This document shows positions 16,601-62,400 of a stretch of DNA of 64,000 bases, piece after piece (position 1 is the first letter of the stretch; each line of letters begins with the position of its first letter). The DNA is from Macrostomum lignano (taxonomy: Eukaryota). The stretch is taken from assembly GCA_002269645.1 (NCBI GenBank), contig NIVC01001554.1, positions 62,001 to 126,000 on the forward strand, given 5' to 3'. The notes under the pieces are model-generated. The model saw only the letters and a program-made list of their open reading frames with translations. It was not told the DNA's origin and searched no databases. Position numbers and translations under genes: made by a program.

Positions 16601-18048
16601 GAGGACGTGGTTGTGATGGCTTCTAAGGGACGTGGTTGTGGTGTCAGAGGACGTGGTTGTGATGGCTTCTAAGGGACGTGGTTGTGGTGTCAGAGGACGT
16701 GGTTGTGATGGCTTCTAAGGGACGTGGTTGTGATGTCAGAGGACGTGGTTGTGGTGTCAGAGGACGTGGTTGTGATGGCTTCTAAGGGACGTGGTTGTGG
16801 TGTCAGAGGACGTGGTTGTGATGTCAGAGGACGTGGTTGTGGTGTCAGAGGACGTGGTTGTGATGGCTTCTAAGGGACGTGGTTGTGGTGTCAGAGGACG
16901 TGGTTGTGATGTCAGAGGACGTGGTTGTGGTGTCAGAGGACGTGGTTGTGATGGCTTCTAAGGGACGTGGTTGTGGTGTCAGAGGACGTGGTTGTGATGG
17001 CTTCTAAGGGACGTGGTTGTGATGTCAGAGGACGTGGTTGTGGTGTCAGAGGACGTGGTTGTGATGGCTTCTAAGGGACGTGGTTGTGGTGTCAGAGGAC
17101 GTGGTTGTGATGTCAGAGGACGTGGTTGTGGTGTCAGAGGACGTGGTTGTGATGGCTTCTAAGGGACGTGGTTGTGGTGTCAGAGGACGTGGTTGTGATG
17201 GCTTCTAAGGGACGTGGTTGTGGTGTCAGAGGACGTGGTTGTGATGGCTTCTAAGGGACGTGGTTGTGATGTCAGAGGACGTGGTTGTGGTGTCAGAGGA
17301 CGTGGTTGTGATGGCTTCTAAGGGACGTGGTTGTGGTGTCAGAGGACGTGGTTGTGATGTCAGAGGACGTGGTTGTGGTGTCAGAGGACGTGGTTGTGAT
17401 GGCTTCTAAGGGACGTGGTTGTGGTGTCAGAGGACGTGGTTGTGATGTCAGAGGACGTGGTTGTGGTGTCAGAGGACGTGGTTGTGATGGCTTCTAAGGG
17501 ACGTGGTTGTGGTGTCAGAGGACGTGGTTGTGATGGCTTCTAAGGGACGTGGTTGTGGTGTCAGAGGACGTGGTTGTGATGTCAGAGGACGTGGTTGTGG
17601 TGTCAGAGGACGTGGTTGTGATGGCTTCTAAGGGACGTGGTTGTGGTGTCAGAGGACGTGGTTGTGGTGTCAGAGGACGTGGTTGTGGTGTCAGAGGACG
17701 TGGTTGTGGTGTCAGAGGACGTGGTTGTGGTGTCAGAGGACGTGGTTGTGACGGCGTCATACTTTTTAGTAAATTAATTTAGCACATGCTTGTTAATAAT
17801 GAAATTTGTGAAAATATTTATGGAAATATTTATTTCCATTTCATAGAATTTTACAAGCAAAACAATTCGTTGGAAGCCTCTTTGGTTGTCCACCCACCTC
17901 TGGCCTCGTCCTCGGTGAATCCGCACTCCACAGCTTCGTCAATGCGCTCCTGCGGTATCTGCAGTGATGACGCAGTGGATTACTTCTCATATTTTAATCA
18001 ATTCTTGATAATCCATAACTTGATACTTACATAATCAGACTCAGACAT
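7648..18048 (-). CDS. Calmodulin-like 4-EF-hand protein, 178 aa (exons 18048-18031, 17958-17898, 9527-9387, 9297-9197, 8379-8229, 7712-7648)
   Basis: Exons total 537 nt, all introns GT-AG: MSESDY/IPQERIDEAVECGFTEDEAR/VVYSCFQLFDADNSGSIDETELRNVMQ...EEVDT/DGNGTVSFKEFCAM...LRKAFS/VFDTDGSGYVDRQELKDG...VDMDGDGQLSIE/EFARVLTMSVKDMIEQNQPAE*; four canonical 12-residue EF loops. Confidence 0.9.
7785..8195. repeat. 30-bp intronic minisatellite
   Basis: Unit CCACCAGATCTTCAGTGCCAGCCCCCCTGT with C-run length variation; lies in the last intron of the calmodulin-like gene. Confidence 0.95.
8418..8647 (+). mobile_element. tRNA-derived CORE-type SINE, near full length
   Basis: A-box-like TGGCTAGAGCG (8441), B-box GGTTCGATTC (8477), then TCCTTGAGCAAGACACTTAAC...CTTCAGTTCACCCAGCTGTAAAATGGGT resembling the MIR/CORE domain; second copy at 25274. 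Confidence 0.7.
9750..17750. repeat. 8-kb two-domain satellite in intron 2 of the calmodulin-like gene
   Basis: 9750-16120: 24/25-bp unit TGGTTGTGATGGCTTCTAAGG(G)AYR, roughly 260 copies by length. 16120-17750: mix of that unit with a 21-bp unit GTGGTTGTGRTGTCAGAGGAC. Confidence 0.98.
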
Positions 18049-25583: not shown

Positions 25584-28500
25584 ATGTCAACAGAAGCAAT
25601 TGGAGATGTTGGCGACATTCGTCGCGTCCTGATCGCTGTTGATCGCAGCGAGCACAGCGAGCGGGCCATCCGCTGGTATTTGAGCAAGCTGCACCGGCCA
25701 TCCGACCAGCTGGTGTTTGTGAACGTGTCCGAGCCGCCGGAAGTTGCTCTGGGCTTCGGCATGGCCGGACCGGCCGTGGCCGAAGTCTATTCTAAAGCTC
25801 TGGATGAGACTGTGAGTCTGCGGCTTCCATTGTGCGCCATTTGTTGCAAATCAATGTAGAAACCCAACCCTACTGATAGTTGCCTAACTGCCTGATATTC
25901 ACTATAGCCAGATAACCAGCCTTAGCCAGATTTAGCTTCAAAAAAGCACTTTATAAAAATTCTCCTAATTACATTACATTTAGAGTTGTCCTACCCTAGA
26001 ATCGTTGTCTATTTACATTAGAACCGTAGTCTATCTACCTCAGAACCGTTGAATATCTACCCTAGAATCGTTGTCTATCTACCTCAGAATTGTCTATCTA
26101 CCCTAGAGTCGTTGTCTATCTACCCTAGAACCGTTGTCTATCTACCCTAGAACCGTTGTCTATCTACCTCAGAACCGTTGACTATCTATCCTAGAACCGT
26201 TGTCTATCTACCTTAGAACCGTTGTCTATCTACCCCAGAACCGTTGTCTATCTACCTTAGAACCGTTGTCTATCTACCTCAGAACCGTTGACTATCTACC
26301 CTAAAACCGTTGTCTATCTACCTTAGAACCGTTGTCTATCTACCCCAGAACCGTTGTCTATCTACCTCAGAACCGTTGTCTATCTACCTCAGAACCGTTG
26401 AATATCTACCCTAGAATCGTTGTCTATCTACCTCAGAATTGTCTATCTACCCTAGAGTCGTTGTCTATCTACCCTAGAACCGTTGTCTATCTACCCTAGA
26501 ACCGTTGTCTATCTACCTCAGAACCGTTGACTATCTATCCTAGAACCGTTGTCTATCTACCTTAGAACCGTTGTCTATCTACCCCAGAACCGTTGTCTAT
26601 CTACCTTAGAACCGTTGTCTATCTACCTCAGAACCGTTGACTATCTACCCTAGAACCGTTGTCTATCTACCTTAGAACCGTTGTCTATCTACCCCAGAAC
26701 CGTTGTCTATCTACCTCAGAACCGTTGTCTATCTACCCTAGAACCGTTGTCTATCTACCTCAGAACCGTTGTCTATCTACCTCAGAACCGTTGTCTATCT
26801 ACCCTAGAACCGTTGTCTATCTACCTCAGAACTGTTGTCTATCTACCCTAGAACCGTTGTCTATCTACCTCAGAACCGTTGACTATCTATCCTAGAACCG
26901 TTGTCTATCTACCTTAGAACCGTTGTCTATCTACCCCAGAACCGTTGTCTATCTACCTTAGAACCGTTGTCTATCTACCTCAGAACCGTTGACTATCTAC
27001 CCTAGAACCGTTGTCTATCTACCTTAGAACCGTTGTCTATCTACCCCAGAACCGTTGTCTATCTACCCTAGAACCGTTGTCTATCTACCTCAGAACTGTT
27101 GTCTATCTACCATAGAACCGTTGTCTATCTACCCTAGAACCGTTGTCTATCTACCTCAGAACTGTTGTCTATCTACCCTAGAACCGTTGTCTATCTACCT
27201 CAGAACTGTTGTCTATCTACCATAGAACCGTTGTCTATCTACCCTAGAACCGTTGTCTATCTACCTCAGAACCGTTGTCTATCTACCTCAGAACCGTTGT
27301 CTATCTACCCTAGAACCGTTGTCTATCTACCTCAGAACTGTTGTCTATCTACCCTAGAACCGTTGTCTATCTACCTCAGAACTGTTGTCTATCTACCATA
27401 GAACCGTTGTCTATCTACCCTAGAACCGTTGTCTATCTACCTCAGAACCGTTGTCTATCTACCTCAGAACCGTTGTCTATCTACCCTAGAACCGTTGTCT
27501 ATCTACCTCAGAACTGTTGTCTATCTACCATAGAACCGTTGTCCATCTACCCTAGAACCGTTGTCCATCTACCCTAGAACCGTTTTCTATCTACCCTAGA
27601 ACCGTTGTCCATCTACCCTAGAACCGTTTTCTATCTACCCTAGAACCGTTGTCTATCTACCCTAGAACCGTTGTCCATCTACCCTAGAACCGTTGTCTAT
27701 CTACCCTAGAATTGTTGCTTATCTACCCTAGAACCGTTGTCCATCTACCCTAGAACCGTTTTCTATCTACCCTAGAACCGTTGTCTATCTACCCTAGAAC
27801 CGTTGTCCATCTACCCTAGAACCGTTGTCTATCTACCCTAGAATTGTTGCTTATCTACCCTACGCTATCTACTCAATCTAGAATCGCTCCCTAGTGTCTA
27901 ACTACGCAAAGAATCGGCCTTCCTTACCTCATAGTTCATATCAAGTAAGAATTTCCCTTACTGTTAAAATTCCAAATTAGCACTGGAACAGCGCTGGCGA
28001 GACTGTCTCTGTGCACTCTGCATGCGCCCCGTGGGAGCCCAGTAAGCACTTATTTGCAACCCGGCTTAGTTGCACAGCCAGCCGATAGTAAAATTTCCTG
28101 CGATAAAATCTTCGCTCTGAATAATTAATGTTGACGCCAGCTTTCAGACCTACGCCTGGGCCTTGGCCAGCATAGCCCAGTCCGAAGTGTCCCTAGAGAT
28201 GCTGGTGAAGTCGAAGCAATTTATCACCCTAGGCCATCTTGTAGAAACACTCTAGACTATCTTGTAAAATCGCTTTAAGACCGTCCTGTAGAAACGGCAT
28301 AGACATCTCTACAGTGTTTTACATTATTTTTTGGCACCGCCAACTGGTTTCACCTTGCGAATTTTAGCATCCGCCACCCCTGTTCACCTGTCGCTGACAC
28401 CTGGCACCCCTGTTCACCTGTCGCTGACACCTGGCACCCCTGTTCACCTGTCGCTGACACCTGGCACCCCAGTTCACTTATCGCTGACACCCGGCACCCC

Positions 28501-44050: not shown

Positions 44051-44574
44051 CGCTAGAGCTCAAATTATTTATTTGCACATGTTTAAACATGATGCATTCC
44101 GAACTATTCGACCAAGCTTATAAGTTTCTGCTATAGTATATTCGCATATGACCATACATTTGTTTTCCTTTAAAGAATTTTCTATTCATCTTATATGCGT
44201 AAATGTATATACACCCGGTAATATTTGTTATTTCAACAACTGACCGTGAAAATGTTATGCATCGGATGAATAAAGTACAATACAACACACTGACTGTTGA
44301 GTTTCCCGGGAAATTTTTTAAACTTGGAAATTTGCTATAACTCAAAGTATTCTGTGTCATTTTTCCCTCCGTTACTTTCACCACGATGTACAGAGAAAAC
44401 CACGTAGGTGACCAGGTACCTGCTGATGAGTGACAGATTTGCCGTTCCAACAGGAGTACAAACTGCTGCTTCATCTGAGCCGCAACCTGCCTGATTTCCA
44501 AGCGTCACAGCTTGCAATTAAAGCCATAGCCTAACAGACACCCAGTCCACAGTCCATTCTGCTATCCTCAGTTG

Positions 44575-45855
44575 GTCATAAAGCTATTCTCCGTGGGTCA
44601 TAGAGCTATCCTCCGTGGGTCATAGAGCTATCCTCCGTGGGTCATAGAGCTATCCTCCGTGGGTCATAGAGCTATCCTCCGTGGGTCATAGAGCTATCCT
44701 CCGTGGGTCATAGAGCTATCCTCCGTGGGTCTTAGAGCTATCCTCCGTGGGTCATAGAGCTATCCTCCGTGGGTCATAGAGCTATCCTCCGTAGGTCATA
44801 GAGCTATCCTCCGTGGGTCATAGAGCTATCCTCCGTGGGTCATAGAGCTATCTTCCGTGGGTCATAGAGCTATCCTCCGTGGGTCATAGAGCTATCCTCC
44901 GTGGGTCATAGAGCTAGCCTCAGTAGGTCATAGAGCTATCCTCCGTGGGTCATAGAGCTATCTTCCGTGGGTCATAGAGCTATCCTCCGTGGGTCATAGA
45001 GCTATCCTCCGTGGGTCATAGAGCTATCCTCCGTGGGTCATAGAGCTATCCTCCGTGGGTCATAGAGCTATCCTCCGTAGGTCATAGAGCTATCCTCCGT
45101 AGGTCATAGAGCTATCCTCCGTGGGTCATAGAGCTATCCTCCGTGGGTCATAGAGCTATCCTCCGTAGGTCATAGAGCTATCCTCCGTGGGTCATAGAGC
45201 TATCCTCCGTGGGTCATAGAGCTATCCTCCGTGGGTCATAGAGCTATCTTCCTTGGGTCATAGAGCTATCCTCCGTGGGTCATAGAGCTATCCTCCGTGG
45301 GTCATAGAGCTAGCCTCAGTAGGTCATAGAGCTATCTTCCGTGGGTCATAGAGCTATCCTCCGTGGGTCATAGAGCTATCTTCCGTGGGTCATAGAGCTA
45401 TCCTCCGTGGGTCATAGAGCTATCCTCCGTGGGTCATAGAGCTATCCTCCGTGGGTCATAGAGCTATCCTCCGTGGGTCATAGAGCTATCCTCCGTGGGT
45501 CATAGAGCTATCCTCCGTAGGTCATAGAGCTATCCTCCGTGGGTCATAGAGCTATCCTCCGTGGGTCATAGAGCTATCTTCCGTGGGTCATAGAGCTATC
45601 CTCCGTGGGTCATAGAACTATCCTCCGTGGGTCATAGAGCTATCTTCCGTGGGTCATAGAGCTAGCCTCATTAGGTCATAGAGCTATCCTCCGTGGGTCA
45701 TAGAGCTAGCCTCAGTAGGTCATAGAGCTATCCCCCGTGGGTCATAGAGCTATCCTCCGTGGGTCATAGAGCTATCCTCCGTGGGTCATAGAGCTATCCT
45801 CCGTGGGTAATAGAGCTATCCTCCGTGGGTCATAGAGCTAGCCTCAGTAGGTCAT
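44575..45855. repeat. 22-bp intergenic minisatellite (~58 copies)
   Basis: Unit GGGTCATAGAGCTATCCTCCGT. Confidence 0.97.
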
Positions 45856-46965: not shown

Positions 46966-49900
46966 TTAATCAGCATTGGCTTCGCCTTCCGTTTTGCTGT
47001 CTGCCGCGGCGGCGGTGGCGATGGCGGCCCCGGTGTCGGTCTTGGCCGCTGTGCCGTCTCCGTTCTCGGAGGCCTTGCCAGCGGCAGAGGCGGCGGCCGT
47101 CTCGCCCCGGCTGTCCCGCTTCTGCCGCTTGTGCGACCTCGAGTCGCGCCTGCCGTCGCCGGCCTCGTCTTCGCTGTCGCTGAGCTCGTTGTCGCCGGAG
47201 ACGCGCTTGTCTGAGGAGCGGATGCTCACCCGCTGCTCGTCCCGCTTGCCGCGGTCCTGCTCCGCCTCCTCCTGGGCGACGTCCTCGTCAACCGCCATGC
47301 CGTCTTCGGGGATGTCTGGCGGCGTTGGGGAATGGAAACTACTGATTGCAAATGCTCAACTTGCTACTTATTAGTAGCAATATGAAATTATTCAAAGTAA
47401 AATTTAAAATATCAATAGGATTTTAGTGCAACAAATCTCATACTTGCTACTCGTTAGTAGCAATATGCAACTCTAAAGTAAAAACAGGAGAAATCAACCA
47501 CAGGGATAGCTGGCATTCCTTTCACTATAACCCCATATGGAATTCTACTGATGGAGATTCCAATGGCTGGGATTTTATGGCAGGGGATTCTACTTAATTC
47601 ACAGTGTATATCAAATCAAGAGTTTATCTTCTTTATGCACCCCCATCCCAAATTAAAAAGCCATTAGCAAAGAACTGCAGGCAGCGCCAGACACGCACCC
47701 TGCATCTGCACCCCAGGCGAGTTCGGCAGCATTCGCAGATTCTCCAGCAGCCGAGTTTTGATCTTCTCCAGGTACTCGGGCGTGTTCTGGTTGGACATGT
47801 TCGACGGCTGAATGTGCAGCTTGAAGTCCGGCCCGAAGTACTCAAAGTAGTCATTGTAGGGCAGCTCGTTTGGAATCTCCTGGCCCAGGGCGATGGCCGT
47901 CTCGTAGGTCCAGCAGCGGGCCACGTTTCTAGGAATTGGGAATGATTTTGGGATCAGCTGGTCACGTTTCTAGGAATTGGGGGCGATTTTGGGATCAGCT
48001 GGTCACGTTTCTAGGAATTGGGGGCGATTTTGGGATCAGCTGGTCACGTTTCTAGAAATTGGGGAAGATTTTGGAATCAGCTGGTCACGTTTCTAGGAAT
48101 TGGGGGCGATTTGGGGATCAGCTAGTCACGTTTCTAAGAATTGGAGGGATTTTGGGATCAGCTGGTCACGTTTCTAGGAATTGGGGGCGATTTGGGGATC
48201 AGCTGGTGACGTTTCTAAGAATTGGAGGGATTTTGGGATCAGCTGGTCACGTTTCTAGGAATTGGGGAAGATTTTGGAATCAGCTGGTCACGTTTCTAGG
48301 AATTGGGGAAGATTTTGGGATTAGCTGGTGACGTTTCTAGGAATTGGGGGCAATTTTGGGATCAGCTGGTCACGGCAACCAGCGTCCCATATTAATCATC
48401 AAGAAGCATTCCAGATTCCCAGATGAGGCACCCTCATGAAACACCCAGAATCCCAGATTAAGGATGCAGAATAGCAGATGAAGCACCCAGAATCCTAAAT
48501 AAGCACCCAGAATCGTAGATAAGCCCCCCCCCAGCATCCCAGATGAGGCTCCAGCATCCCAGAGGAGGCACCCAACATCCCAGATGAGGCAACCAGCTCA
48601 CCTGATGGTGTAGCCGCCGCCACCCAGCAACAGCAGGGGGGTGTCGAACTTCTTCATGAACTGGACGCAGCGGCCGTGGCCCTTCAGCGACAGGTTGAAG
48701 CAGCCAAGGCGGTCCCCAGCCAGAGAGTCGGCACCGCACTGCAGAACGGTGGCGGAGGGCCTGTAGTGCTCCATGACCTTGGTGATGACGGGGGCAAAGA
48801 TCTGCTCAAATGCCTCATCGTCAATGCCGTCCCTCAGCGGAAAGTTCACAGCGTAGTGCTTGCCCCGGCCGGCCCCGATGTCCTTGAGGTCGCCGGTGCC
48901 GGGAAAGTACTCGCCGTACTTGTGAAACGAGACGGTCATGACGCGGTCGGTGGTGTAGAAGGCCTCCTCGACGCCGTCTCCGTGGTGGATGTCGATGTCG
49001 ACGTACAGAACCCGCTGGTGGTACTTGAGCAGCTCCAGGATTGCCAACACGATGTCGTTGACGTAGCAGAAGCCGGACGCCTCGGACTTCTTGGCGTGGT
49101 GAAGGCCGCCGCCCCAGTTGATGGCAATGTCGGTGGCGCCCTTGTTCAGCTTGACGGCGCCGGCGATGGAGCCGCCCGTGCTGAGCTGGCAGAACTCGTA
49201 CAGGCCGTCGAACACGGGGCAGTCCTCGCCGACGTTGAAACGCTGCATCTGCTTGTTGAACTCGTGCATGTTGTCCGGCCGGATGGAGCGCAGGAACTTG
49301 ATGTAGTCGTCGCTATGGAAACGCGTCATCTCTTCGGCTGTGGCCTTGTGCGGCCGGTAGATCTCCATCTTGCGGTACAGGCCATAGTTGAGCAGCAGGT
49401 TGTGCGTCATCCTGATGCGGTGCGGCTTCATGGGGTGGCCCTGGCCATAGTAGTAGTTGCCGATGTCGCCTGGGCAAGTCAATGGAAGCTGTTATATGCT
49501 ATATTAAATCTTTATACAAATGGGGTTAATAGGGTGACTAGGGTCGGGGAAAATTATAGAGATCAGAGCATATTGGTTGACACAGGGTTTGCCTTTTGTG
49601 AGTGTGACTGTGAATGCTAAAAACACTCAATAACTATTATTTTATACTATGTGACATGTATTGGTTTCCCGACAGACATTCAGACAGACATTCAGAAATC
49701 GTTCAGTAAATGTTTAACAAAATTGTCTATTTATTACGCAAGATACTGTGAATTTATAGAAACTTTTACGCATGTCTCTGCTTTAAAAAGACACCTCAGA
49801 CACACACAAAGACGCTTCACAAGCTGAGATATTCCCTAGCAACTGTTGTTACGACGTTTCCCAATATACCGAATACTGTATATAGTAGTTTTTTGAGAAG

Positions 49901-52900
49901 CCGCTACATCGTCCCACTTTGGTCTTTCTGCATGAAATTTGCACAGCTGTTTTACGCATGTCTCTGCTTTAAAAAGACACCTCAGACACACACAAAGACG
50001 CTTCACAAGCTGAGATATTCCCTAGCAACTGTTGTTACGACGTTTCCCAATATACCGAATACTGTATATAGTAGTTTTTTGAGAAGCCGCTACATTGTCC
50101 CACTTTGGTCTTTCTGCATGAAATTTGCACAGCTGTTTTACGCATGTCTCTGCTTTAAAAAGACACCTCAGACACACACAAAGACGCTTCACAAGCTGAG
50201 ATATTCCCTAGCAACTGTTGTTACGACGTTTCCCAATATACCGAATACTGTATATAGTAGTTTTTTGAGAAGCCACTACATCGTCCCACTTTGGTCTTTC
50301 TGCATGAAATTTGCACAGCTGTTTTACGCATGTCTCTGCTTTAAAAAGACACCTCAGACACACACAAAGACGCTTCACAAGCTGAGATATTCCCTAGCAA
50401 CTGTTGTTACGACGTTTCCCAATATACCGAATACTGTATATAGTAGTTTTTTGAGAAGCCGCTACATCGTCCCACTTTGGTCTTTCTGCATGAAATTTGC
50501 ACAGCTGTTTTACGCATGTCTCTGCTTTAAAAAGACACCTCAGACACACACAAAGACGCTTCACAAGCTGAGATATTCCCTAGCAACTGTTGTTACGACG
50601 TTTCCCAATATACCGAATACTGTATATAGTAGTTTTTTGAGAAGCCGCTACATCGTCCCACTTTGGTCTTTCTGCATGAAATTTGCACAGCTGTTTTACG
50701 CATGTCTCTGCTTTAAAAAGACACCTCAGACACACACAAAGACGCTTCACAAGCTGAGATATTCCCTAGCAACTGTTGTTACGACGTTTCCCAATATACC
50801 GAATACTGTATATAGTAGTTTTTTGAGAAGCCGCTACATCGTCCCACTTTGGTCTTTCTGCATGAAATTTGCACAGCTGTTTTACGCATGTCTCTGCTTT
50901 AAAAAGACACCTCAGACACACACAAAGACGCTTCACAAGCTGAGATATTCCCTAGCAACTGTTGTTACGACGTTTCCCAATATACCGAATACTGTATATA
51001 GTAGTTTTTTGAGAAGCCGCTACATCGTCCCACTTTGGTCTTTCTGCATGAAATTTGCACAGCTGTTTTACGCATGTCTCTGCTTTAAAAAGACACCTCA
51101 GACACACACAAAGACGCTTCACAAGCTGAGATATTCCCTAGCAACGGTTGCCTGAAGGCATGCTCATATCTAACTTGCATTTGGACACCGGCATGGAATG
51201 TACGTTATACTTGTATTTGCCTTCTTCCGATCTGAAGCACTTTACTTTAGGCAGATCTATCAGCAATATTAACACTGTACAGGAGGCAGTTTTTCTTTAT
51301 GTACATTCGTTGTCATTTTGCCATGTACATTACGCAAGAGGCCTATTGAAGAATTAATTATAAAAAATTTTAGACAGTGAAGAAAATTCTGGTCCCGATG
51401 CTTACGCAAAGCCATTTTTGGCTTTTGGCTGTGTTCTTCGACGATCTCACAGTGCACTATCTGGACTCCATACGTCGGAGTGACAGAAGAAAGCAACTGG
51501 CATTGAACTATACTGCCAAATTGAAGTAGGTAAAATGTACACGAGAAGGGGGGCTTTGAAATTTGCAAGGCATATTAACTGAACTTACGTGCCATTTTCT
51601 AATGCACGCGAAGGCGTATTCAGCATGCCAGTGAAGTATGAGACAGACTAGGCCCATGGGCTAAGGTCTGCGATGCTTCACGCCTGCCCCTATCTTCAGC
51701 AGGTCAAGGCTGGTGGGAGGTCTGCACCCTCTATTTGCCTCTGGCAGCCGCAGACCCCCCCCCCACGCTGTCTCGCAAGTCGACCCAGGGTACTCGTCCC
51801 CGCGTGTGTTCAAGGCAGTCCCTAGGGCTGCTGGACAGACTGGGCTCCGGCGCTGGCGACCCTATCCAGTGGCTTCGGCCGAATTTGGGTATGCGGGTCT
51901 GGCTCGCCAACCTGCAGGCCGTGGTACTGCTCAACGTACTCTCTAATGCCTAAGGTGTTGACCGTGCCGATGGGCTGGAAGGCCGGGGAGTAGTCCGGTC
52001 GCAAGCGGTCCCCCTCCTGGTGTCGGGCCAGCCTTGAGGGTGCTATTGGCCTACTGCCCGGTCAGGTGGAGCGGCCGGGTGGGTACCGCGCCCCTTTGAG
52101 GGTAGCCCACCAACCTTTTATCATGGCCTTCGAGCCGTCTATGGATAATCAAGCTAACTCTAGGGACGGGGACCCTTCTAAACCCCAACCTCAGTCCGAA
52201 GGACCGGCCGGCCCTGCTGGCAGATCCCAACCGACTGATTCAACTGTGGCAAAGGAAGGACCGGCTGGCTCTGCTGGCAGATCCGACCAGAGCTACCAAA
52301 CTCAAAATACCCAAAGACCTGCCAGCTCCGCTGGTGGATCTAAGGGAACCGCGAGCTCTGAGCCTAAAGGACCGGCCAAATCTGGCAGATCCGATGAAGC
52401 TCAGCGGGCTCGGCTTGAGCGCAAACGCGCTAAACAACGCGCCAAAAGGCAGGCCAAGAAGGGAGCTGCGGGGGCCAAAGCGGCGGCGTCCACCATGGAT
52501 GCTGAAGCGACTGGAGTCCCAAGGCAACCAGGCGGGCCGGCCGGTGGAAGCTCCAGTAGTTCAGCGGCGGCGCTCCCTGGAGCTGCTGCCGCGGCTGCTG
52601 AGGCCGAAACCACGGCGCAACAAATGGCCACTGCCAACAAGGAGGTTCCTTCGGGAGCTACCTTTGCGGCGAAGGCCAAGGCCAAAATCCCGGGAGTGAT
52701 CATCCAAGGTCGCGACCAGGACTGGACCACTGATCAGCTTCAAAAAGTGTGGAGTGCTGTTGACTCCTATCTGATTGAGCTGACTGTCGAGGAGGGAATC
52801 TCCATCGGCATTGAGCGGATGGTGCTGCGAAGCACATTCGTTCTTATTGCTCCTAGCAGCGAGGAGGACGCTCGGCGGCTGCTCCAGCGGCTACCGACGG

Positions 52901-55900
52901 TCTCCTTGGATGCTGACCTTGGCGGAGCTCTTTTTCTTCGCGAGGGCCAGCGTCCAAAGACGATACCCTATGTGGTTTTCGTCCCTGCTAAGAGCACCGC
53001 AGCTGGACCAGACGTTATTCGCCGGGTCCTACTGCGTCTGAACCCCGACCTCCCTGCTAGTGGACTGGTGTATCACCGTAAAGTCCGCAGGGGGGAGACG
53101 GGCAACTCAATTGTCCTCGGCCTTTCCAGCACTTGGGCGAGTCGGTACCCTAATGGATCCTCTTTCCAGCTGGGTGCCCTCAAGCTCAAGATGCGCCGAG
53201 GAAAGTCTGCCAAAGGGAAGGCTACTGCCAACCCCGGCATCTCCGGCAAGAGCGGGGCGCAGTCTAAGGCCCAAGGAAAGGCGCAAGCCGATCCCAAAGC
53301 CAAAGCTGCATCTCGCCCCTCTGCTAGCAGCAGTTCGGCGACCGCGGTAACGGCTCCGGCCAAGCCCCGGGAACCAAACCTGCCAGTCGGAGAAGGAGTT
53401 GAGGACGAGGCCGGGTCTTCGGAATCCGAGCTCTCCTCGGCCACCTTGGTGGGGTCTGAAGGTAAAGATGCAGGTGAGGAAGCTTCCTCCATCCTGTCAT
53501 CGGAGCCTGAGGACTCTGCTGGGGGGGCCGGTGGGGGTGAGGAGGCCATGGACGTCGACCAACTCCCATCTCCCAGTCAAGCCCCAGCGGCCTGGGACGA
53601 GGACGATCTGTTGTCCAAGTCTCCTTGATGGCCCTGGGCTCTAGCCAGAAATTGCATTTAATACAGTATGACTAAGCTCCACGCTGCCAAAGGAGCGACA
53701 TTCTGTCTGCAAATTAATTTACAGCATTGCGTATCTGCGTCAGTAAATCTGATGAAGATTGCTGAGCTGTACAGGCCAGGCCTCATCCTGATCCAGGAAC
53801 CCTGGATGCGCAACGGTAAGTTGCCCAACATTCCCTCTGGCTACTCTGATTTTTATGTGTGTGGCCCGGGGAACAGCCGCCCTAGAGCGGCTATCCTCGC
53901 TGCTAGCCATCTCCAGGCTTGGCTGAGGACTGATCTCTCTGATGGAGACCTTTGTGTCATCCAATCTAATCATTTCTCTCCGCGTACGTGTCTTGTTGCC
54001 TCGGTTTATATCCCAGGCGACAGAGACCCTGCTCCTGAGAGTTTACTGCGCCTCGCGCAGTACTGCGAGTCCCAGAACGCTGAGCTGTGCTTAGGGGGCG
54101 ACCTCAACGCGCACCACAAGCACTGGGGCAGCAAAGATACCAACACTAGAGGAGAGGAGCTTCTGGCCCTCATCTCTAACACAAACCTCATGCTCTGCAA
54201 CCGCGGCAGCACTCCTACCTTTAATAATGGCAGATGGACCGAGGTCCTCGACGCCACACTCGTTACCCCAAGACTCTTTGACAGAGTTGAGGAGTGGAGA
54301 GTCTGGTCTGAGGAGCCCTCCCTGTCTGACCACTGCTTTATCGCCTTTAATATCGCGGACACTAAAACCCAGTCTCCGATCACTTGGAGACGCAAATCCG
54401 CAACACTGATTGGGCGGCCTACAAGGCTGCCCTTGATCTGCACCTGCAGGAACTCACGGACTTACGTCCGATTGAGACCTGCGAGGATGTGGATCATATG
54501 GCTGAGACGCTGACAGGTTGCATTATTGAAGCCTACGAAGCGGCTTGTCCTGCTCGCGCCTACAAAGGCAAGACCTCGGCGCCGTGGTGGAACCCGGAGC
54601 TGGGGAAACTCAGGCGGAAGGCCAAAAGCCTTCATCGCCGTGCCATGAAGACCGGAAACCCGGAGGACATGGAGCTTTTCCGGCAAGCCTCCCGCAATTT
54701 CAAATCTGAAGTGCGCAAGGCCAAGGAATGTAAGTGGCGCCAATTCTGCAATGAATTGGATCAAGACAGACCTACTTCTAGGCTTGTCAAGGCCCTTACA
54801 ATGGACAAAATGTCCAAATTAGCCATGATCAAAAAAGATGATGGCTCTCTTACTAAAGACCCTGAAGAAGTGCTTCAGCATATGCTTAGCACATTCTTCC
54901 CGAGGGTACCTACTGCTAGACCGGAGCCCAACCATTCGATGGATGGAGCCACCCTAGCGGCGGGCATTGTCACTGAAGACCTAATCGCTCGTGCGGTCAG
55001 AACCTTCAAACCCTTCAAATCTCCTGGACCTGATGGTATCTACCCTGTTCTCCTTCGTGAAGCAGCCAAGATACCCTCGTTCCTGAGACTCACCCGCAAT
55101 CTCATGCGGGCCTCTATCCAGCTGGGATACGTTCCCAAATGCTGGACTGAAGCTCGGGTAGTCTTTATTCCCAAACCTGGGAAGGGTGACTACCAAAGCG
55201 TCAAGGCCTTCCGGCCTATTAGCTTAACGTCAGCAATGCTTAAGCTCACTGAGAGGCTTATTCTCTGGCGGCTGCTGTCCTGCGAGCTGACAGCGATGCC
55301 CCTCAGCAATAATCAGCACGCCTTCCGCACCGGGAGGTCGACTGACAGCGCCCTGCATGCGATTGTCGAGAAGATTGAAAGGGCGGTACTGGGTGACGGT
55401 TACGCTCTGGCTCTCTTTCTTGACATTGTTGGCGCCTTCGACAACGTTATCTTTGAAGCGTTTCAGAGGGCCCTTCAAAATCGCAAAGCTCATGCTACCC
55501 TCATACGGTGGATCATGTACATGATCTCCAACCGTACGGTCACTGCCCAACTTCTTGGGCAAACTGCCTCCACCAGAGTCTGTAAGGGTGGACCCCAAGG
55601 CGGAGTCCTCACCCCGACGCTCTGGAACCTGGTCATGGACGCTCTTTTGAGTGACTCCCGACCCGACCCCGTCTTCAAAGTCGGGTATGCTGATGACGTC
55701 ACGGCCATTGTGGCAGGACCGTCTCCCAGCACGCTCAGGGATCTGATGCAGAGCTTTATCCGCAAAGCAGAATCCTGGGCCAATGACAATGGTCTGGAAC
55801 TCTCTGAGCCCAAAACCGTTGCCATTATGTTTACCAGCAGACTACGCTGGAACATACGTCCTCTGCAGCTCTACGGCAGAGATATTGCCTTCGCGCACCA

Positions 55901-58900
55901 GACCAGATGTCTCGGGGTCACACTTGACCACCGGCTCAACTGGTCCTTCCACGTGAAAGCAAAAGCCAAGCGTGCCTCAGCCATCCTGGCCCAGCTCCGA
56001 CGAGCACTTGGCACTTCTTGGGGTCTATCCCCAAAGCGGCTTTGGTGGATCTATACTTCCGTAGTTAGACCTGCCATTACGTACGCCTCTGTTGTCTGGG
56101 TTAGCGCTACCCAGGTCAAAAGCCATGCAGACCTGCTCAACACGATCCAAGGCAGAGCGTGTAGGCTCATCTGCAACGCCACCAGGTCCACGCCCTTTGC
56201 TGGCATGGGGGCCTTCCTTAATCTTCCGCCTCTTGACCTCTTCATCAGGGGTGAGGCGGCTAGAACGACGCGGCGTCTAATTGATGCCGGCGTCAAATTC
56301 ATTTACATGAGAGCACCTGCTAAGCGGAACCTTGTCCCGCATAGCGATCTGTGCCTCAACTTTCTCAACGAGTGTCAGGCCAATCGCGTCTTCACCGATG
56401 GCATTGCCTCAACGCTCAACCTGAGACAGCGCTACTCCGTAGCTATCGACTCGCGCGATAACATCAATGACCATTGGAACCCTGGTGAGCTTCATTGCTA
56501 CACCGACGGTTCTAAGCAGTCAGCCAACACCGGCTTTGGTGTTGGAATCTTTCTGAACGGGAGGGTCATCGCTACCCACGCTCAATACACTGGGGTCAAC
56601 TCCAGTGTTTTCCAAAATGAAGTTCTGGCCATCAGCTCCTGCACTGCAGAGCTTCTCGCCACTGGCGTTACTGGTAAGAACATCATTTTCCATTCGGACA
56701 GCCAAGCTGCCTTGCACGCCATCAGTGGCTGCAGCACCAACTCTGCTACAGTCCTTGACTGTATCAAACTCCTCAATGTGTTGGGTTCCGCCAACAAAAT
56801 TACCCTTAAGTGGGTTCCGGGGCATGTGGGGATCCGAGGAAATGAGTTGGCTGACACCCTTGCAAAAGTTGGTGCCTCCGGCTCCTCTCTCGGCCCCGAA
56901 CCTCTTGTCCCGATTCCTGGCTGTGTCATCGACTCACGCATCAAAGCGTGGATCAGGACTCAGCACCGCTCGACTTGGGCGAACCGCACGAACTGCAGGC
57001 AATCCAGAGGCGCTGTCCCTCAGCCCTCTCACCAGCTCCGGAAGCTCCTCTTGCGCCTCTCGCGCAGAGACATCCGGGCTGCCACCATGACCCTCTCTGG
57101 TCACGGCTGCTTCTCCAGGCACCAGTACCTGCAGGGCAACGCCACCAACGCCACCTGTAGTTTCTGCAACTCAGGTGACGAAACCGCTGAGCATTTCGTC
57201 AGCATCTGTCCCGCCTTCACGCGGGCCAGACTCACTTACCTCGGGCCACACACATCTATTACTGAAGCGTGCAAACCCGAAAACTTTAATCAGCTCATGC
57301 GCTACCTTCGGGCCACCCGCAGGGCTGAACTCTCCTTTCCAGAGAGCACCATAGCTGCTGGCGACACTGGGGGACCTCCCTGGGCGGCGCCAACCCTCCG
57401 TCCATAGCGACGCGTCGGCCGTTCAGGGACTAGCGGAATGGGCGCCCGCGCCTTCCCGCTGTGTCCCCTCCGGGACAGCCCTGCAGCTAAGTCAAAGTAA
57501 GTCAAAGCCATTTTCTAATTTTAGTGAGCTCCTTGCTTCTTCAGCTGCTTCTACGTTTCTCCCTGAGCAGATGGAGCACCTTAGTGGTAGAAAGTTTAGA
57601 AGTGTAGTAAGAATGTGCACCCAGCAAAAAGATACGTTTTCATGTGGCGTTCTGACCTGCTTATTTGGCCGCAATTTGTTTCTTGATAAGTGCCTACTAG
57701 CTTAGCTACTCATCTGAGCCATCGGCGAACAAAGAAATAAAACCGACAAAGATAACTGTTAGATTTAACCTTCTCCTTAGTTTACTTCACACTTCAGATT
57801 GAATTGGAGTCTTAGACTACTAGCAGTATTATTGAATGATGATGTTGAATAAAGAAAGGGACAATGCAGTTATCGCGGATCAAGTCTGACGTGATATTTA
57901 TGGGGTGTTTTATGTTTCGTTGCACGAAATGTTTTGATGCTTATTTTCTGTAGTTTGATTCTCAGTTGCTGACGGGATTACCCCATCGTCTGAGTCGATA
58001 ACATTAATTCTGTTCGATTTTACTAATGTGCACTGTTTAGCAAAGTGATCACTTTTCCGACGTTTGGCGCCTGTCTTTGGCGTTTGCACGTTCTGCAGTT
58101 GTTCGGTGGGCGATTTCGCTTACCCTTGTCGGAGTTGTCAATTGCGAATCGGTTTGAGACTCATTTGCTTCTGCGGTAGGCAGATCAATTTCTTAAAGTG
58201 ATACCTGATACTCTCCAGTCATAATTTAGTCGCAAACTTTCTTTGCCATTTTGAGAGTCAGGTCTTACTTTATTCTGGTAGTCGTTCGACAAATTTGCTA
58301 TCTCGATAAAAGATAAAAGAGAATAAAAATGCCCTTAGCCTGCTGTCAGTAGGCTAGTAAGTTTAGAGCCCATGTGCCAGCGCGGGATTTGGGAAAAAGT
58401 GCGTCCTCATCAAAATGTCGTAAAAACATTTGCTAGGGAATATCTCAGCTTGTGAAGCGTCTTTGTGTGTGTCTGAGGTGTCTTTTTAAAGCAGAGACAT
58501 GCGTAAAACAGCTGTGCAAATTTCATGCAGAAAGACCAAAGTGGGACGATGTAGCGGCTTCTCAAAAAACTACTATATACAGTATTCGGTATATTGGGAA
58601 ACGTCGTAACAACAGTTGCTAGGGAATATCTCAGCTTGTGAAGCGTCTTTGTGTGTGTCTGAGGTGTCTTTTTAAAGCAGAGACATGCGTAAAACAGCTG
58701 TGCAAATTTCATGCAGAAAGACCAAAGTGGGACGATGTAGTGGCTTCTCAAAAAACTACTATATACAGTATTCGGTATATTGGGAAACGTCGTAACAACA
58801 GTTGCTAGGGAATATCTCAGCTTGTGAAGCGTCTTTGTGTGTGTCTGAGGTGTCTTTTTAAAGCAGAGACATGCGTAAAACAGCTGTGCAAATTTCATGC

Positions 58901-60668
58901 AGAAAGACCAAAGTGGGACGATGTAGCGGCTTCTCAAAAAACTACTATATACAGTATTCGGTATATTGGGAAACGTCGTAACAACAGTTGCTAGGGAATA
59001 TCTCAGCTTGTGAAGCGTCTTTGTGTGTGTCTGAGGTGTCTTTTTAAAGCAGAGACATGCGTAAAACAGCTGTGCAAATTTCATGCAGAAAGACCAAAGT
59101 GGGACGATGTAGTGGCTTCTCAAAAAACTACTATATACAGTATTCGGTATATTGGGAAACGTCGTAACAACAGTTGCTAGGGAATATCTCAGCTTGTGAA
59201 GCGTCTTTGTGTGTGTCTGAGGTGTCTTTTTAAAGCAGAGACATGCGTAAAACAGCTGTGCAAATTTCATGCAGAAAGACCAAAGTGGGACGATGTAGTG
59301 GCTTCTCAAAAAACTACTATATACAGTATTCGGTATATTGGGAAACGTCGTAACAACAGTTGCTAGGGAATATCTCAGCTTGTGAAGCGTCTTTGTGTGT
59401 GTCTGAGGTGTCTTTTTAAAGCAGAGACATGCGTAAAACAGCTGTGCAAATTTCATGCAGAAAGACCAAAGTGGGACGATGTAGCGGCTTCTCAAAAACT
59501 ACTATATACAGTATTCGGTATATTGGGAAACGTCGTAACAACAGTTGCTAGGGAATGTCTCAGCTTGTGAAGCGTCTTTGTGTGTGTCTGAGGTGTCTTT
59601 TTAAAGCAGAGACATGCGTAAAAGTTTCTATAAATTCACAGTATCTTGCGTAATAAATAGACAATTTTGTTAAACATTTACTGAACGATTTCTGAATGTC
59701 TGTCTGAATGTCTGTCGGGAAACCAATACATCTATGTGATTATTGTTTTGTAAGCTTTATATTCACATAATAGATTATAACAGTAATAAAATATACATGT
59801 GCATATTCCTCTTCTATTAGTTTTATATTTTCATAGCAAAGCTTTTCAAAAGTTCTGACTGATTTTCAAATAGAGAATTAAATTTTATCATTGTCACTAA
59901 CTAACTTTATAGCATAATTCTTTAGCTTCCCCTGCTTTATTATTTTAGCCTATGCCCTCCAAACAGTTAAATTGTGCCACAATGTCAATTGGACCATGTA
60001 CCAATTCTTAATAATAAATAAAATTTTAATAGCAACAGCAAGAAATGCTTATGTTAGCATAGAAGCCCTGGAATACTTGCAGGCCTTAAGTGCTAATGAT
60101 ATTTTTTTAGCAACAAAGCAAAGTATTTATAGACTTTAACAATAATAAGTAAACCTTTGGCAGAACTATTTTTGTTAGATTTTTTTAGCTTTATATATGC
60201 TAAGCATTAAGAAACTAAGAACTTGGTTCTATTAAATATTCTAGATATGTAAAAAATATCATACAAGACTTAGGCCTAAAAGTAATGATATAGGCCTAAT
60301 AGAACCTTGGAAAATTAGGCTACCCTTGGAATTTTTTTCTGAACTCTCAGCACAGCATATGCTTGGCAATTTTTAGAATTTATTCCAATGAGGTCTTGAC
60401 TCTTGTGCTCTAAGAAAAATCAATACTTTTGCTTGCATTGAAAAATCCTATACACTTCAGACTTGTAGGCCTATGCTATGAGTCTGAGTATGACCAGGCC
60501 TAGGGCTGGGCATACATGTAGTAGTCAGATATGTTATATGTATAGAAATATATGTTTAATGTTAGTATTATTAGAATTTATAACATTCCCTTTCTTACAA
60601 GCATACTTAGACTTACCATCGTAATAATAGCAAACTCTTTTCTTGGTTCCAGTCAAAGAGCTGGTCAT
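46966..60668 (-). CDS. HDAC1: Class I histone deacetylase HDAC1/2 (Rpd3), 499 aa (exons 60668-60617, 49469-48602, 47928-47699, 47315-46966)
   Basis: [43 protein letters not shown]...[19 protein letters not shown]...[15 protein letters not shown]...[16 protein letters not shown]...[18 protein letters not shown]...; exons total 1500 nt, all introns GT-AG. Intron 1 (49470-60616) is 11.1 kb. Confidence 0.97.
47922..48373. repeat. 41-bp minisatellite containing the HDAC exon-3 splice acceptor in its unit
   Basis: Unit CACGTTTCTAGGAATTGGGGGCGATTTTGGGATCAGCTGGT, ~11 copies; on the gene strand most copies read ...CCCAATTCCTAG/AAACGTG. Confidence 0.93.
49764..51144 (+). repeat. 186-bp tandem array in the left foldback arm (~7.4 units)
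   Basis: GAGAAGCC recurs at 49895, 50081...; period 186 bp. Confidence 0.97.
51604..51845 (+). ncRNA. HDV-like self-cleaving ribozyme at the LINE 5' end
   Basis: P1 GCACGCG (51604-10) pairs with CGCGTGT (51801-07), with a G1-U wobble; P2 CCCA(G) (51784-88) with (C)TGGG (51840-44); P3 GGG (51788-90) with CCC (51798-800); L3 TACTCGT; P1.1 AC (51792-93) with GT (51808-09); P4 hairpin 51810-51835; candidate catalytic C51836. Confidence 0.8.
52123..53628 (+). CDS. LINE ORF1 (nucleic-acid-binding/chaperone), 501 aa from the first ATG
   Basis: Intact ORF upstream of the APE-RT ORF; disordered basic termini around a globular core (…[20 protein letters not shown]…SIVLGLS…[11 protein letters not shown]) resembling DUF4780-type ORF1 as recalled; no CCHC knuckle. 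Confidence 0.8.
   Translation: MAFEPSMDNQANSRDGDPSKPQPQSEGPAGPAGRSQPTDSTVAKEGPAGSAGRSDQSYQTQNTQRPASSAGGSKGTASSEPKGPAKSGRSDEAQRARLERKRAKQRAKRQAKKGAAGAKAAASTMDAEATGVPRQPGGPAGGSSSSSAAALPGAAAAAAEAETTAQQMATANKEVPSGATFAAKAKAKIPGVIIQGRDQDWTTDQLQKVWSAVDSYLIELTVEEGISIGIERMVLRSTFVLIAPSSEEDARRLLQRLPTVSLDADLGGALFLREGQRPKTIPYVVFVPAKSTAAGPDVIRRVLLRLNPDLPASGLVYHRKVRRGETGNSIVLGLSSTWASRYPNGSSFQLGALKLKMRRGKSAKGKATANPGISGKSGAQSKAQGKAQADPKAKAASRPSASSSSATAVTAPAKPREPNLPVGEGVEDEAGSSESELSSATLVGSEGKDAGEEASSILSSEPEDSAGGAGGGEEAMDVDQLPSPSQAPAAWDEDDLLSKSP
53668..57407 (+). CDS. LINE ORF2 (APE endonuclease-reverse transcriptase-RNase H-zinc knuckle), one -1 frameshift at ~54394-54396
   Basis: APE: [33 protein letters not shown]: [37 protein letters not shown]. 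RNase H: [34 protein letters not shown]. Knuckle: CSFC...[10 protein letters not shown]. Adding one A at 54394-96 gives a single ~1246-aa ORF. Confidence 0.93.
58430..59625 (-). repeat. 186-bp tandem array in the right foldback arm (~6.4 units, inverted)
   Basis: Reverse complement of the 49764-51144 array; one unit shorter. Confidence 0.97.
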
Positions 60669-61340
60669 TCTGAGATTAAGATTCTGGTAATAATGTTGAA
60701 CGAAACAATATTACAGAAATTTGGCCCTGATAATTTAACTTCAGTGGTATAATAAGAGATGGTGATTCAGAAAAAGTCAATTAGTCAGCATCAGCAGAGC
60801 AAAACTCAAAAGCAAAGCTAAATTAACAACTGCAACTCGTTTGATCTTTGTTCGCTAGATAAATAGTAAATAAAAAATAGCGGCTGGGAAAAGTGTACTC
60901 GTAATTTAGTTCATGTTTCTTTTAAAATATCGTCACTGACGAGAACTTTTCATTCAACATGCACCAGATTAAAGAAAAGATCGGTAGTCAGAAGATTCAT
61001 ATATGCCTGAATCGGCTGAGGCCTCTGTTATAACTTTAAATGTATAAGGCAAGGACGACTAGTTGTTCTTGGGAATGTGCACATATAGGTACAATGTATG
61101 TTTTAAATGCATGTGTACATAAAATTCTATGGTTTTTGACGCATTAATCAATGGTTTTATATTCACTCTTAAAAAGGGAGGAATGTGTGAATATAAATCA
61201 CGGATCGGAGTTTTTCATATTGTGCCAAAAAAAATGAAAGTTTCTACCTCGTGCATGACCGTAATATTCGCGGTGCGAAGGGAGTCCATAAGAATTGCCC
61301 GCAGACAAATTGCCCGCCGTGATTTGCCCGGTCTTCAATT

Positions 61341-62400
61341 CCTGCTGCTGCTGAGCCTCCAAAGCGGCTTCCGCTCGGACAGGTCCACTACCGAGCAGGT
61401 TGCCACCATCCGCTCTGTCATCGAGGCCTGCAAGACCCGCCAGCGCTCCGTGTCAATTATCTTCGCCGACTTTCGCAAGGCGTTTGACTCGGTGTCCAGG
61501 CCTGCGATCGCGTGGCTTCTATCTCATTATGGCGTACCTGCTGCGCTGCTGAGCGCGGTGATAGACCTCTACCGCAACTCCAGGGCTTTGTCATGTCGAG
61601 CGACGGCCCCACAGAAGAGTTCGGCACCAGCTCAGGCGTCCTTCATGGCGACGCGCTGGCTCTTCTGCTCTTCCTCGTAGTTGTGGACTACGTGCTTCGT
61701 CGGTCCCTCCGCGAGGATGACAGCTACTTCTTGCTGGTCCCACGCCGAAGCTCCAGACACCCTGCTGTTTCGCTTCTCGCTCTCGCGTATGCTGACAACA
61801 TCGCTCTGCTCTGCCGCGATCCAGCTGCTGCCCAGCGCGCTCTCACAAGGCTTTGCAATGAGGGTGCCCGTGTTGGGCTGCGGCGATTGTCTCCGACAGG
61901 AGGAACCAGGCCTGGCGCGCCGCGCACTTCCTCAGGAACATTTTCATTCAGCTGCCAGAGAGGACCTGAAGGTGCGCCTGTTCCTCGCGGCCTTCTGTAC
62001 GGCATGGAGGCTGTGCCGCTGACCGAGACGCGAGAGCGGGCCTTGGACGCGCTTTACCGATCGCTGCTGCGCTACGCGCTGGGCGTGCACTACCCGGAGC
62101 GCCTACCGACCAACGCTCTGATGGCCCACGCCGGAGCTCCGCCCCTGAGCGCTACCCTGCGCCGGCGCCGCCAGATGCTCCAGACCCTGGGTCGCGGTGC
62201 GCCCGTCCCTCTGGCCCTGGCCATGCTGCACCGGCCGACCGAGCAATTGCGCCACGGCCAGGCCCGCACTGCCACTCTAACGGACTGCCTCATCGCAGAC
62301 TTGCAGGCGCTTAAGCTGACCCCTCAGGCTGCTGCTGCCTGCCCCTCCCGCCTGTTCTGCGAGCGCGTGCGCGCGAGGCGCCTCCCCACTGCGTCTTAAT
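61341..62400 (+). pseudogene. Degenerate 5'-truncated non-LTR RT fragment (RTE-like)
   Basis: QSGFR..RST, FADFRKAFDSV, SGVLHGDAL (QG changed to HG), AYADNI (YADD changed to YADN), LLYGMEA...LLRYALGV; frameshift near 61585 and internal deletions. Confidence 0.85.

Follow-up and report, generated by a model that had tools for sequence, protein, structure and literature searches.

The 64,000-nt stretch of the genome of the flatworm Macrostomum lignano analyzed here (contig NIVC01001554.1, positions 62,001 to 126,000 of the forward strand; hereafter the window) contains a full-length long interspersed nuclear element (LINE) retrotransposon at 51604-57506, whose 5,903 bp are bracketed by a perfect 13-bp target-site duplication (TSD) and whose 5' end can be drawn as the nested double pseudoknot of hepatitis delta virus (HDV)-like self-cleaving ribozymes. 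Because the duplication fixes the boundary, G51604 is the first base of the element, and the proposal of an earlier note on this DNA that the fold opens at exactly that base is borne out. Downstream of a 519-nt 5' untranslated region (UTR) the element carries two open reading frames (ORFs), the second of which combines, by Pfam, an apurinic/apyrimidinic (AP) endonuclease (Exo_endo_phos_2), a reverse transcriptase (RT; RVT_1), and an RNase H domain; it is interrupted by a frameshift near 54393, between the endonuclease and RT parts, where a tblastn alignment of the related protein P0002 passes from frame 1 to frame 3. Together with a C-terminal Cys/His motif, this domain set fits the LOA clade and, equally, I, Ingi/L1Tc, Nimb, Tad1, and R1. 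Parts of M. lignano gene models match ORF1 at 99% identity, and in protein searches portions of both ORFs show 96-99% identity to segments of such models (P0007, P0008, P0121, P0123), the host of the LINE being this flatworm and no insect.

Read from G51604, the order P1-(J1/2)-P2-P3-L3-P3'-P1'-P1.1-P4-J4/2-P2' is complete at 51604-51844 (Table 1), with every part lying where the earlier note had placed it, and the exact arrangement was also recovered by an HDV descriptor scan of the window. P1 comprises seven base pairs, a G51604-U51807 wobble followed by six Watson-Crick pairs, and its 3' strand abuts that of P3; in HDV-like ribozymes, the point of cleavage is determined by a P1 placed in this way (PMC3774820). 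Across the class, P1 has 6-7 bp, and its opening nucleotide at the cleavage site is usually a G in a G-U pair. The two base pairs that the class calls for between L3 and J1/4 are present as A51792-U51809 and C51793-G51808, which form P1.1, and the loop UACUCGU retains the conserved L3 nucleotides, namely the U at its 5' side and the C-G with the reverse-wobble G, both the C and the G being known to be conserved and important (PMC3774820). At the level of the element family, we regard it as likely that 51604-51847 (about 241-244 nt) corresponds to a self-cleaving ribozyme of the HDV-like, nested double-pseudoknot type whose J1/2 is a large structured domain, a probable 5'-processing ribozyme predicted from sequence.

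Table 1. Parts of the predicted HDV-like ribozyme and of the LINE that carries it, with positions in the window
Feature	Position	Strand	Remarks
Left TSD copy GCCATTTTCTAAT	51591-51603	+	identical to 57507-57519; match ends at 13 bp
P1 5' strand GCACGCG	51604-51610	+	pairs with 51801-51807; predicted cleavage site directly 5' of G51604
J1/2 insert, 173 nt	51611-51783	+	closing stem and three hairpins; candidate P1.2-type peripheral domain
P2 5' strand CCCA	51784-51787	+	pairs with 51841-51844 UGGG
P3 GGG/CCC	51788-51790 with 51798-51800	+	encloses L3
L3 UACUCGU	51791-51797	+	positions 2-3 (A51792, C51793) form P1.1
P1 3' strand CGCGUGU	51801-51807	+	directly 3' of P3
P1.1 3' strand	G51808, U51809	+	A51792-U51809 and C51793-G51808
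J1/4 UCAA	51810-51813	+	CAA motif also in L001 and the Rfam consensus
P4 hairpin GGCAG-U-CC CUAG GG CUGCU	51814-51832	+	read from the sequence
J4/2 GGACAGAC	51833-51840	+	contains candidate catalytic C51836
P2 3' strand UGGG	51841-51844	+	end of the ribozyme
ORF1	52123-53628	+	501 aa from the first ATG; no Pfam domain
ORF2	53668-57407	+	AP endonuclease, RT, RNase H (Pfam) and C-terminal Cys/His motif; one frameshift
3' UTR	57408-57506	+	ends in AAGTCAAAGTAAGTCAAA; conserved blocks in common with the 3' end of L001
Right TSD copy GCCATTTTCTAAT	57507-57519	+	identical to 51591-51603

One close relative is represented by DNA, and it permits a comparison of the helices. A search with the ORF2 protein returned two proteins at 57-58% identity, one of which, P0002, is encoded on a 6,492-nt Logan contig, L001. 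Its ORF1 and ORF2 are arranged as in the window, with only 34% identity in ORF1 and a conserved 3' end, and the contig starts at the base homologous to G51604. The earlier note had let its case hinge on whether P1, P3, and P1.1 pairing is conserved in another full-length copy; in L001, the one contig on which this was checked, all helices are kept. P1 is formed by GCCUGC (bases 1-6) and GCAGGC (189-194), 6 bp opening with G1-C, as compared with GCACGCG/CGCGUGU in the window; P2 is CUCAGA/UCUGAG (6-7 bp) as compared with CCCA/UGGG; P1.1 is CU/AG as compared with AC/GU, with both pairs changed on both sides; P4 is a 9-bp hairpin of unrelated sequence; and P3 is GGG/CCC in both. Among the unpaired segments, L3 reads UCUCCGU in L001 versus UACUCGU in the window, and J1/4 reads GCAAUG versus UCAA. 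Two-sided changes that still pair thus number two in P1 (besides one G-U to G-C), three in P2, two in P1.1, and three in P4, or 10 compensated pairs across four helices; in P1 and P1.1 taken together, five of the eight pairs have changed and all eight still pair. It is important to note that the register of P1 and P1.1 in L001 was preset by the window model, at base 1 and at the bases directly after P3', and the agreement is therefore a passed prediction and not the result of a search; a 6-mer suitable for P1 occurs at 1.8e-3 of L001 positions. Furthermore, the minimum free energy (MFE) structure that RNAfold returns, unguided, for L001 1-238 consists of P1, the closed J1/2 domain, P3, and P4 (z = -2.5).

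The contig itself (1-6492; Logan run ERR14788467) begins exactly at G1 of P1 and, past the 3' end of the LINE, extends for another ~520 nt into an antisense ORF. Should ERR14788467 be an RNA-seq run, this start would count as in vivo evidence that the RNA begins at the cleavage site. The contig of P0005, considered as a further close relative, was set aside as 5'-truncated. No further copies of the element were found within the 64-kb window, an ORF1 profile search for close relatives returned only M. lignano gene-model fragments, an ORF1 core-domain search and an exact ORF1 look-up gave no match, and a scan of viral and prokaryotic collections for the J1/2 motif gave 0 matches.

The J1/2 segment, 163 nt long in L001 as compared with 173 nt in the window, folds in both into the same closed domain, in which a closing stem that begins 3-4 nt past P1 and stops 7 nt before P2 encloses three hairpins (RNAfold). 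RNAalifold places 34 consensus pairs in the two J1/2 sequences, 7 of them compensatory, and a block common to both, AGGCCCAWGGGCUAAGGUCU, is nearly invariant. The 160-nt J1/2 of a far more distant element, L008, is also strongly structured (z = -3.6). By analogy, the domain resembles the P1.2 "pinch" domains and the large J1/2 loops of R2 elements: large natural HDV-like ribozymes carry J1/2 domains, and a P1.2 helix within them, which "pinches" P1 and P2 together, accelerates cleavage by as much as ~three orders of magnitude (PMC4908430).

Metagenomic loci with ORF2 relatives at ~30-36% identity number 80, and in three of them (L008, L018, and L027) an HDV-like core lies upstream of ORF1. The clearest of these near-canonical cores are L008, with P1 at 45-51 (GGUGAUC) pairing with 232-238, a J1/2 of 160 nt, a P2 of 6 bp, L3 UCCACGUU, and J4/2 GCCAA, and L027, which is compact, with P1 at 848-854, a short J1/2, and a P2 of 4 bp plus a bulge. 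In L018, P1, P3, and L3 UCCUCGU are present and P2 is not unambiguously assignable. All three share a P1.1 of CC/GG and a G-U as the first P1 pair. A candidate core in L015, without convincing P2 and P4, was not counted. Searches for TSDs of at least 8 bp around L008, L018, and L027 found none, and their P1 starts are not tied to element ends. The scores of both clear cores stay below the Rfam gathering thresholds: L008 matches only two models, HDV_ribozyme (19.8 of the 50 bits required, E 1.3) and HDV-F-prausnitzii, both sub-threshold, and the best matches of L027 align end to end, to HDV-F-prausnitzii (25.7 of 44 bits, E 0.5) and drz-agam-1 (20.4 bits). At gathering score, an Rfam scan of 20 related loci left L008, L018, and L027 all below threshold.

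To bring these elements together, a five-sequence structural alignment (window, L001, L008, L018, and L027) was made by hand and its pairs were counted by script; MAFFT, even when given padded sequences, failed to recover the register. In the hand-made alignment 106 of 111 cells pair, a figure that is partly circular because the helices of the distant relatives had been located through a complementarity search; shifting the partner strand by 1-3 columns lowers the pairing to 35-45%. Every paired column but the outermost one of P2 contains at least two pair types. In the unpaired segments, the L3 pattern U..(U/C)CG(U) is common to all five sequences and the Rfam HDV consensus, and J4/2 reads G-C-(U/C)-(A/G)-(A/G/C) in the four relatives, the window being one A longer, before the C; C51836 aligns with a C in each of the four. 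The shared unpaired motifs, among them the U..CG of L3 and, for the window and L001, the CAA of J1/4, speak for homology with the HDV class.

Two further sequence features recur in the same elements. In four of the five ribozyme-bearing elements a CGGCGCY motif lies just 3' of, or overlaps, the P2 3' strand (window 51848-51854, L001 241-247, L008 287-293, and L018 356-362), and it recurs although the ORF2 products of L008 and L018 are only ~30-36% identical to that of L001. TAAT stands directly 5' of the P1 G in both the window (51600-51603, within the TSD) and L008 (41-44), which may reflect a target-site preference or coincidence.

The circularity in the pair count is one of several points that weigh against a ribozyme at this locus. 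P2, which stacks on P3 in this class, has only 4 bp where at least 5 bp are usual for R2 (PMC3774820), and a fifth pair, G51788-C51840, would compete with P3 (C51800). In HDV-like ribozymes, the unpaired catalytic cytosine of J4/2 usually precedes purines that dock on P3; here the J4/2 context GGACAGA deviates from the GGCUAA-type consensus, with an extra A preceding the C and the second consensus A kept, and J4/2 of L001, UAGCUGC, is without either of the two consensus A's. The covariation in question is that with a single close relative. Five other relatives with 5' regions (L082, L083, and L085-L087) showed no core, and the predicted ribozyme is therefore patchy in this group. The covariance-model search that the earlier note had proposed, run with Infernal and the Rfam HDV, CPEB3, and drz models, left both the window and L001 undetected: Rfam 15 gave no HDV-class match in the whole window at gathering score, in 51500-51950 and the core 51770-51855 at E<=10, or in the L001 core at E<=10 (HDV-class models considered: HDV_ribozyme RF00094, CPEB3, drz-Agam-1/2-2, and HDV-F-prausnitzii RF02682). 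These models cannot bridge a J1/2 of 170 nt. The nested MFE structure of 51604-51847 is likewise a non-HDV fold, at -98.7 kcal/mol versus -93.4 kcal/mol for the nested part of the HDV fold; P2 (-4.1) and P1.1, uncounted by the folding program, would roughly close this gap of ~5 kcal/mol. Finally, the frameshift in ORF2 means that this copy may or may not remain catalytically competent.

As a separate observation on the relatives without a core, Pfam DUF4780 is found in ORF1 of L082 (323-2167), L083 (1619-3400), and L086 (819-2420) and is absent from ORF1 of the window and L001; the elements that bear DUF4780 show no HDV-like core.

Taking the self-cleaving ribozyme as our favored reading, we propose that the LINE is transcribed inside a longer read-through or host-driven transcript, in which the ribozyme would fold co-transcriptionally, with the closed J1/2 domain keeping P1 and P2 joined at their distal ends and C51836 of J4/2 catalyzing scission 5' of G51604. 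Self-scission in this class is site-specific and Mg2+-dependent and leaves 2',3'-cyclic phosphate and 5'-OH ends. The released RNA would thus carry a 5'-OH and begin at base 1 of the element, and a full-length copy made from it by target-primed reverse transcription would regenerate both the ribozyme and the precise 5' junction. As has been suggested for R2 and L1Tc (PMC6765202), translation of the uncapped RNA may also benefit from the ribozyme fold that it retains.

The alternative that survives best leaves this mechanism to the family, which has or had an active HDV-like ribozyme, and takes the present copy to be dead, for instance through the extra A in J4/2 or the short P2. We consider this possible, if clearly the lesser prospect. 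The frameshift near 54393 speaks for it, as does a J4/2 that exceeds those of the four relatives by one base, and R2 offers documented cases of dead copies whose ribozymes are inactive, one of them in the sow bug (PMC3774820); the perfect 13-bp TSD and the otherwise open ORFs argue instead for a young insertion, and bases private to this copy are not distinguishable without a second copy of the same family. Given a family-level ribozyme, the question of whether this frameshifted copy is still active is roughly evenly balanced.

Rather improbable, in our estimate, is a conserved structured 5' UTR domain with no catalytic role, acting as an internal promoter, as a translation element or internal ribosome entry site, or as a binding platform for the ORF1 or ORF2 protein. 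Under this alternative the 5'-terminal helix merely closes the domain, the likeness to HDV is a relic or coincidence, and the precise 5' end stems from initiation at base 1. It would sit well with J1/2, with its conserved hairpin and near-invariant block, being the best-conserved part of the region, with the failure of the Rfam HDV models on the window and L001, and with the weak P2 and noncanonical J4/2; moreover, some LINE 5' ends do double as promoters, such as the first 77 nt of L1Tc (PMC3383444). In L1Tc, however, promoter and ribozyme coexist in those same 77 nt, such that a promoter role would not exclude a ribozyme, and a noncatalytic domain leaves unexplained why covariation extends to P2 and P1.1, which are pseudoknot pairings lying outside the closed domain, why L3 U..CG and J1/4 CAA agree with the HDV consensus, and why canonical HDV-like cores occur at the same place in distant relatives.

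Chance deserves mention because permissive descriptors are readily satisfied. With J1/2 allowed up to 300 nt and P4 up to 150 nt, a loose HDV descriptor found 15 distinct P1 starts on the plus strand and 5 on the minus strand of the 64-kb window, and a relaxed one gave 42 plus-strand versus 44 minus-strand matches across the window and the loci of its relatives; with matches equal on both strands, the fold alone is therefore not above chance, and the descriptor scans were dismissed as evidence for being nonspecific. The case for more than chance is made by the position of P1 together with the conservation of the fold, with the distant relatives as further support: a 7-mer able to form the window P1 occurs at only 2.1e-4 of window positions, and one of these sits on the TSD-fixed base. 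That a GC-rich, hairpin-rich 5' UTR simply happens to satisfy the descriptor, although such matches come up at about one per 3-5 kb, with the minus strand yielding as many, and although the folding z-score of 51604-51847 is only -1.15, is thus very hard to credit beside a P1 that begins at the first base of the element both here and in L001, compensatory changes in four helices, and an L001 MFE structure that reproduces the nested part of the fold.

The notion that a LINE frees its own RNA from a co-transcript by means of an HDV-like ribozyme is already well established, as 5' HDV-like ribozymes are known in R2, L1Tc, baggins, and RTE elements (PMC3774820, PMC3185411, PMC6765202). R2 ribozymes share with the fold described here the nested double pseudoknot, a (here predicted) cleavage site determined by the annealing of a 6-7-nt P1 to the 7 nt that directly follow P3/L3, and, as proposed for this element, release of the element RNA from a co-transcript, as well as long P1-P1' separations and J1/2 loops, a variable P4 and J4/2, and the conserved C and G of L3 (PMC3774820). 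R2 itself differs in being site-specific for 28S ribosomal DNA, with a single ORF, a restriction-like endonuclease, and cleavage often upstream in the 28S sequence, whereas the M. lignano element is dispersed, has two ORFs (with AP endonuclease, RT, and RNase H), a 13-bp TSD, a predicted cut exactly at its first base, and a shorter P2 (4-5 bp). A further known system is L1Tc of Trypanosoma cruzi, a dispersed LINE likewise endowed with AP endonuclease, RT, RNase H, and a C-terminal nucleic-acid-binding motif (PMC3185411, PMC3383444, PMC6765202), with TSDs of ~12 bp as compared with 13 bp here, and with a ribozyme, L1TcRz, that starts at element +1 and for which release from long co-transcripts has been proposed. 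L1TcRz is, however, compact, with 77 nt that overlap an internal promoter, in contrast to ~244 nt in the flatworm element owing to its 173-nt J1/2.

In drz-Agam-2 and other large HDV-like ribozymes with P1.2 (RTE; PMC4908430), a J1/2 helix or domain juxtaposes the distal ends of P1 and P2, as would be the case here, and baggins (LOA-clade) ribozymes (PMC6765202) and RTE ribozymes stand at the 5' ends of promoter-less LINEs. Compared with drz-Agam-2 and baggins, J1/2 in the present family is a three-hairpin multiloop of 160-173 nt and not a single helix, P1.1 pairs as A-U and C-G in place of two G-C pairs, and the Rfam drz models find no match on the window. Among flatworms, R2 of the planarian Schmidtea has a predicted HDV-like ribozyme (PMC3774820) and schistosome LINEs use twister variants (PMC8501958); a literature search found no paper linking Macrostomum to an HDV-like ribozyme.

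Against this background, the suggestion in the earlier note of an undescribed ribozyme variant went too far. Published examples cover P1-P1' separations of 23 to more than 700 nt, 6-7-bp P1 helices, variable P4 and J4/2, J1/2 loops that reach 216-498 nt (in silkmoth R2 elements; PMC3774820), and "P1.2" domains structured within J1/2 (PMC3774820, PMC4908430), and the long J1/2, a P1.1 other than two G-C pairs, and the variable J4/2 lie within the known flexibility of HDV-like ribozymes. A bolder joint reading, in which the Macrostomum lineage (window and L001) holds a distinct and still-active structural subclass, strikes us as unlikely. It would be characterized by a P1.1 that is not G-C and drifts by compensation, by a J4/2 lacking the canonical C-N-A-A, by a P2 of minimal length, and by a conserved three-hairpin J1/2 that is obligatory, and equally unlikely, as part of the same whole, J1/2 would both pinch P1 and P2 for catalysis and serve the LINE in a second role, as promoter, in translation, or in protein binding. 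Were it true, such a subclass would be missed entirely by current covariance models, and HDV-like ribozymes in lophotrochozoan LINEs would be under-counted.

If active, the favored, family-level ribozyme would extend HDV-like 5'-end processing to an AP endonuclease- and RNase H-bearing LINE of a free-living flatworm; with transgenesis established in M. lignano, a laboratory model, in vivo tests of what the ribozyme contributes to retrotransposition and translation would be feasible. It would also mean that Rfam-type models miss HDV-like ribozymes with a long J1/2 and drifted P1.1 and J4/2, which TSD-anchored 5' ends can recover.

At the other end of the element, the blocks TAGCGGAATGGGCG and CCCTGCAGCTAAGTCAAAGT are conserved between the 3' UTR of the window (57408-57506) and that of L001 (5849-5975), a conservation that probably marks an RT recognition element; the 3' ends of the distant relatives differ, L027 ending in (GGTAA)n and L008 in poly(A).

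The surroundings of the LINE are rich in repeats. Arrays of a 186-bp satellite, 99.4% identical and in inverted orientation, flank it at 49656-51150 and 58413-59731, which places the LINE within the ~1.36-kb spacer of a large, foldback-like inverted repeat. The 420-aa and 361-aa "ORFs" of these arrays merely read through the repeats, and the ORF at 49893-51155 was rejected as a gene for the same reading through the 186-bp satellite. Positions 9660-17759 are taken up by 8 kb of tandem repeats whose unit is 24/49 bp (GTGGTTGTGATGGCTTC(A/T)AAGGAT) and whose GC skew is extreme (+0.6), and many further minisatellite arrays with 20-44-bp units are spread across 100-48400, for example at 25991-27862 and 44561-45855. 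Beyond the second satellite array, two overlapping plus-strand ORFs at 61129-62399 show weak RVT_1 matches and look like fragments of a second, degraded retroelement.

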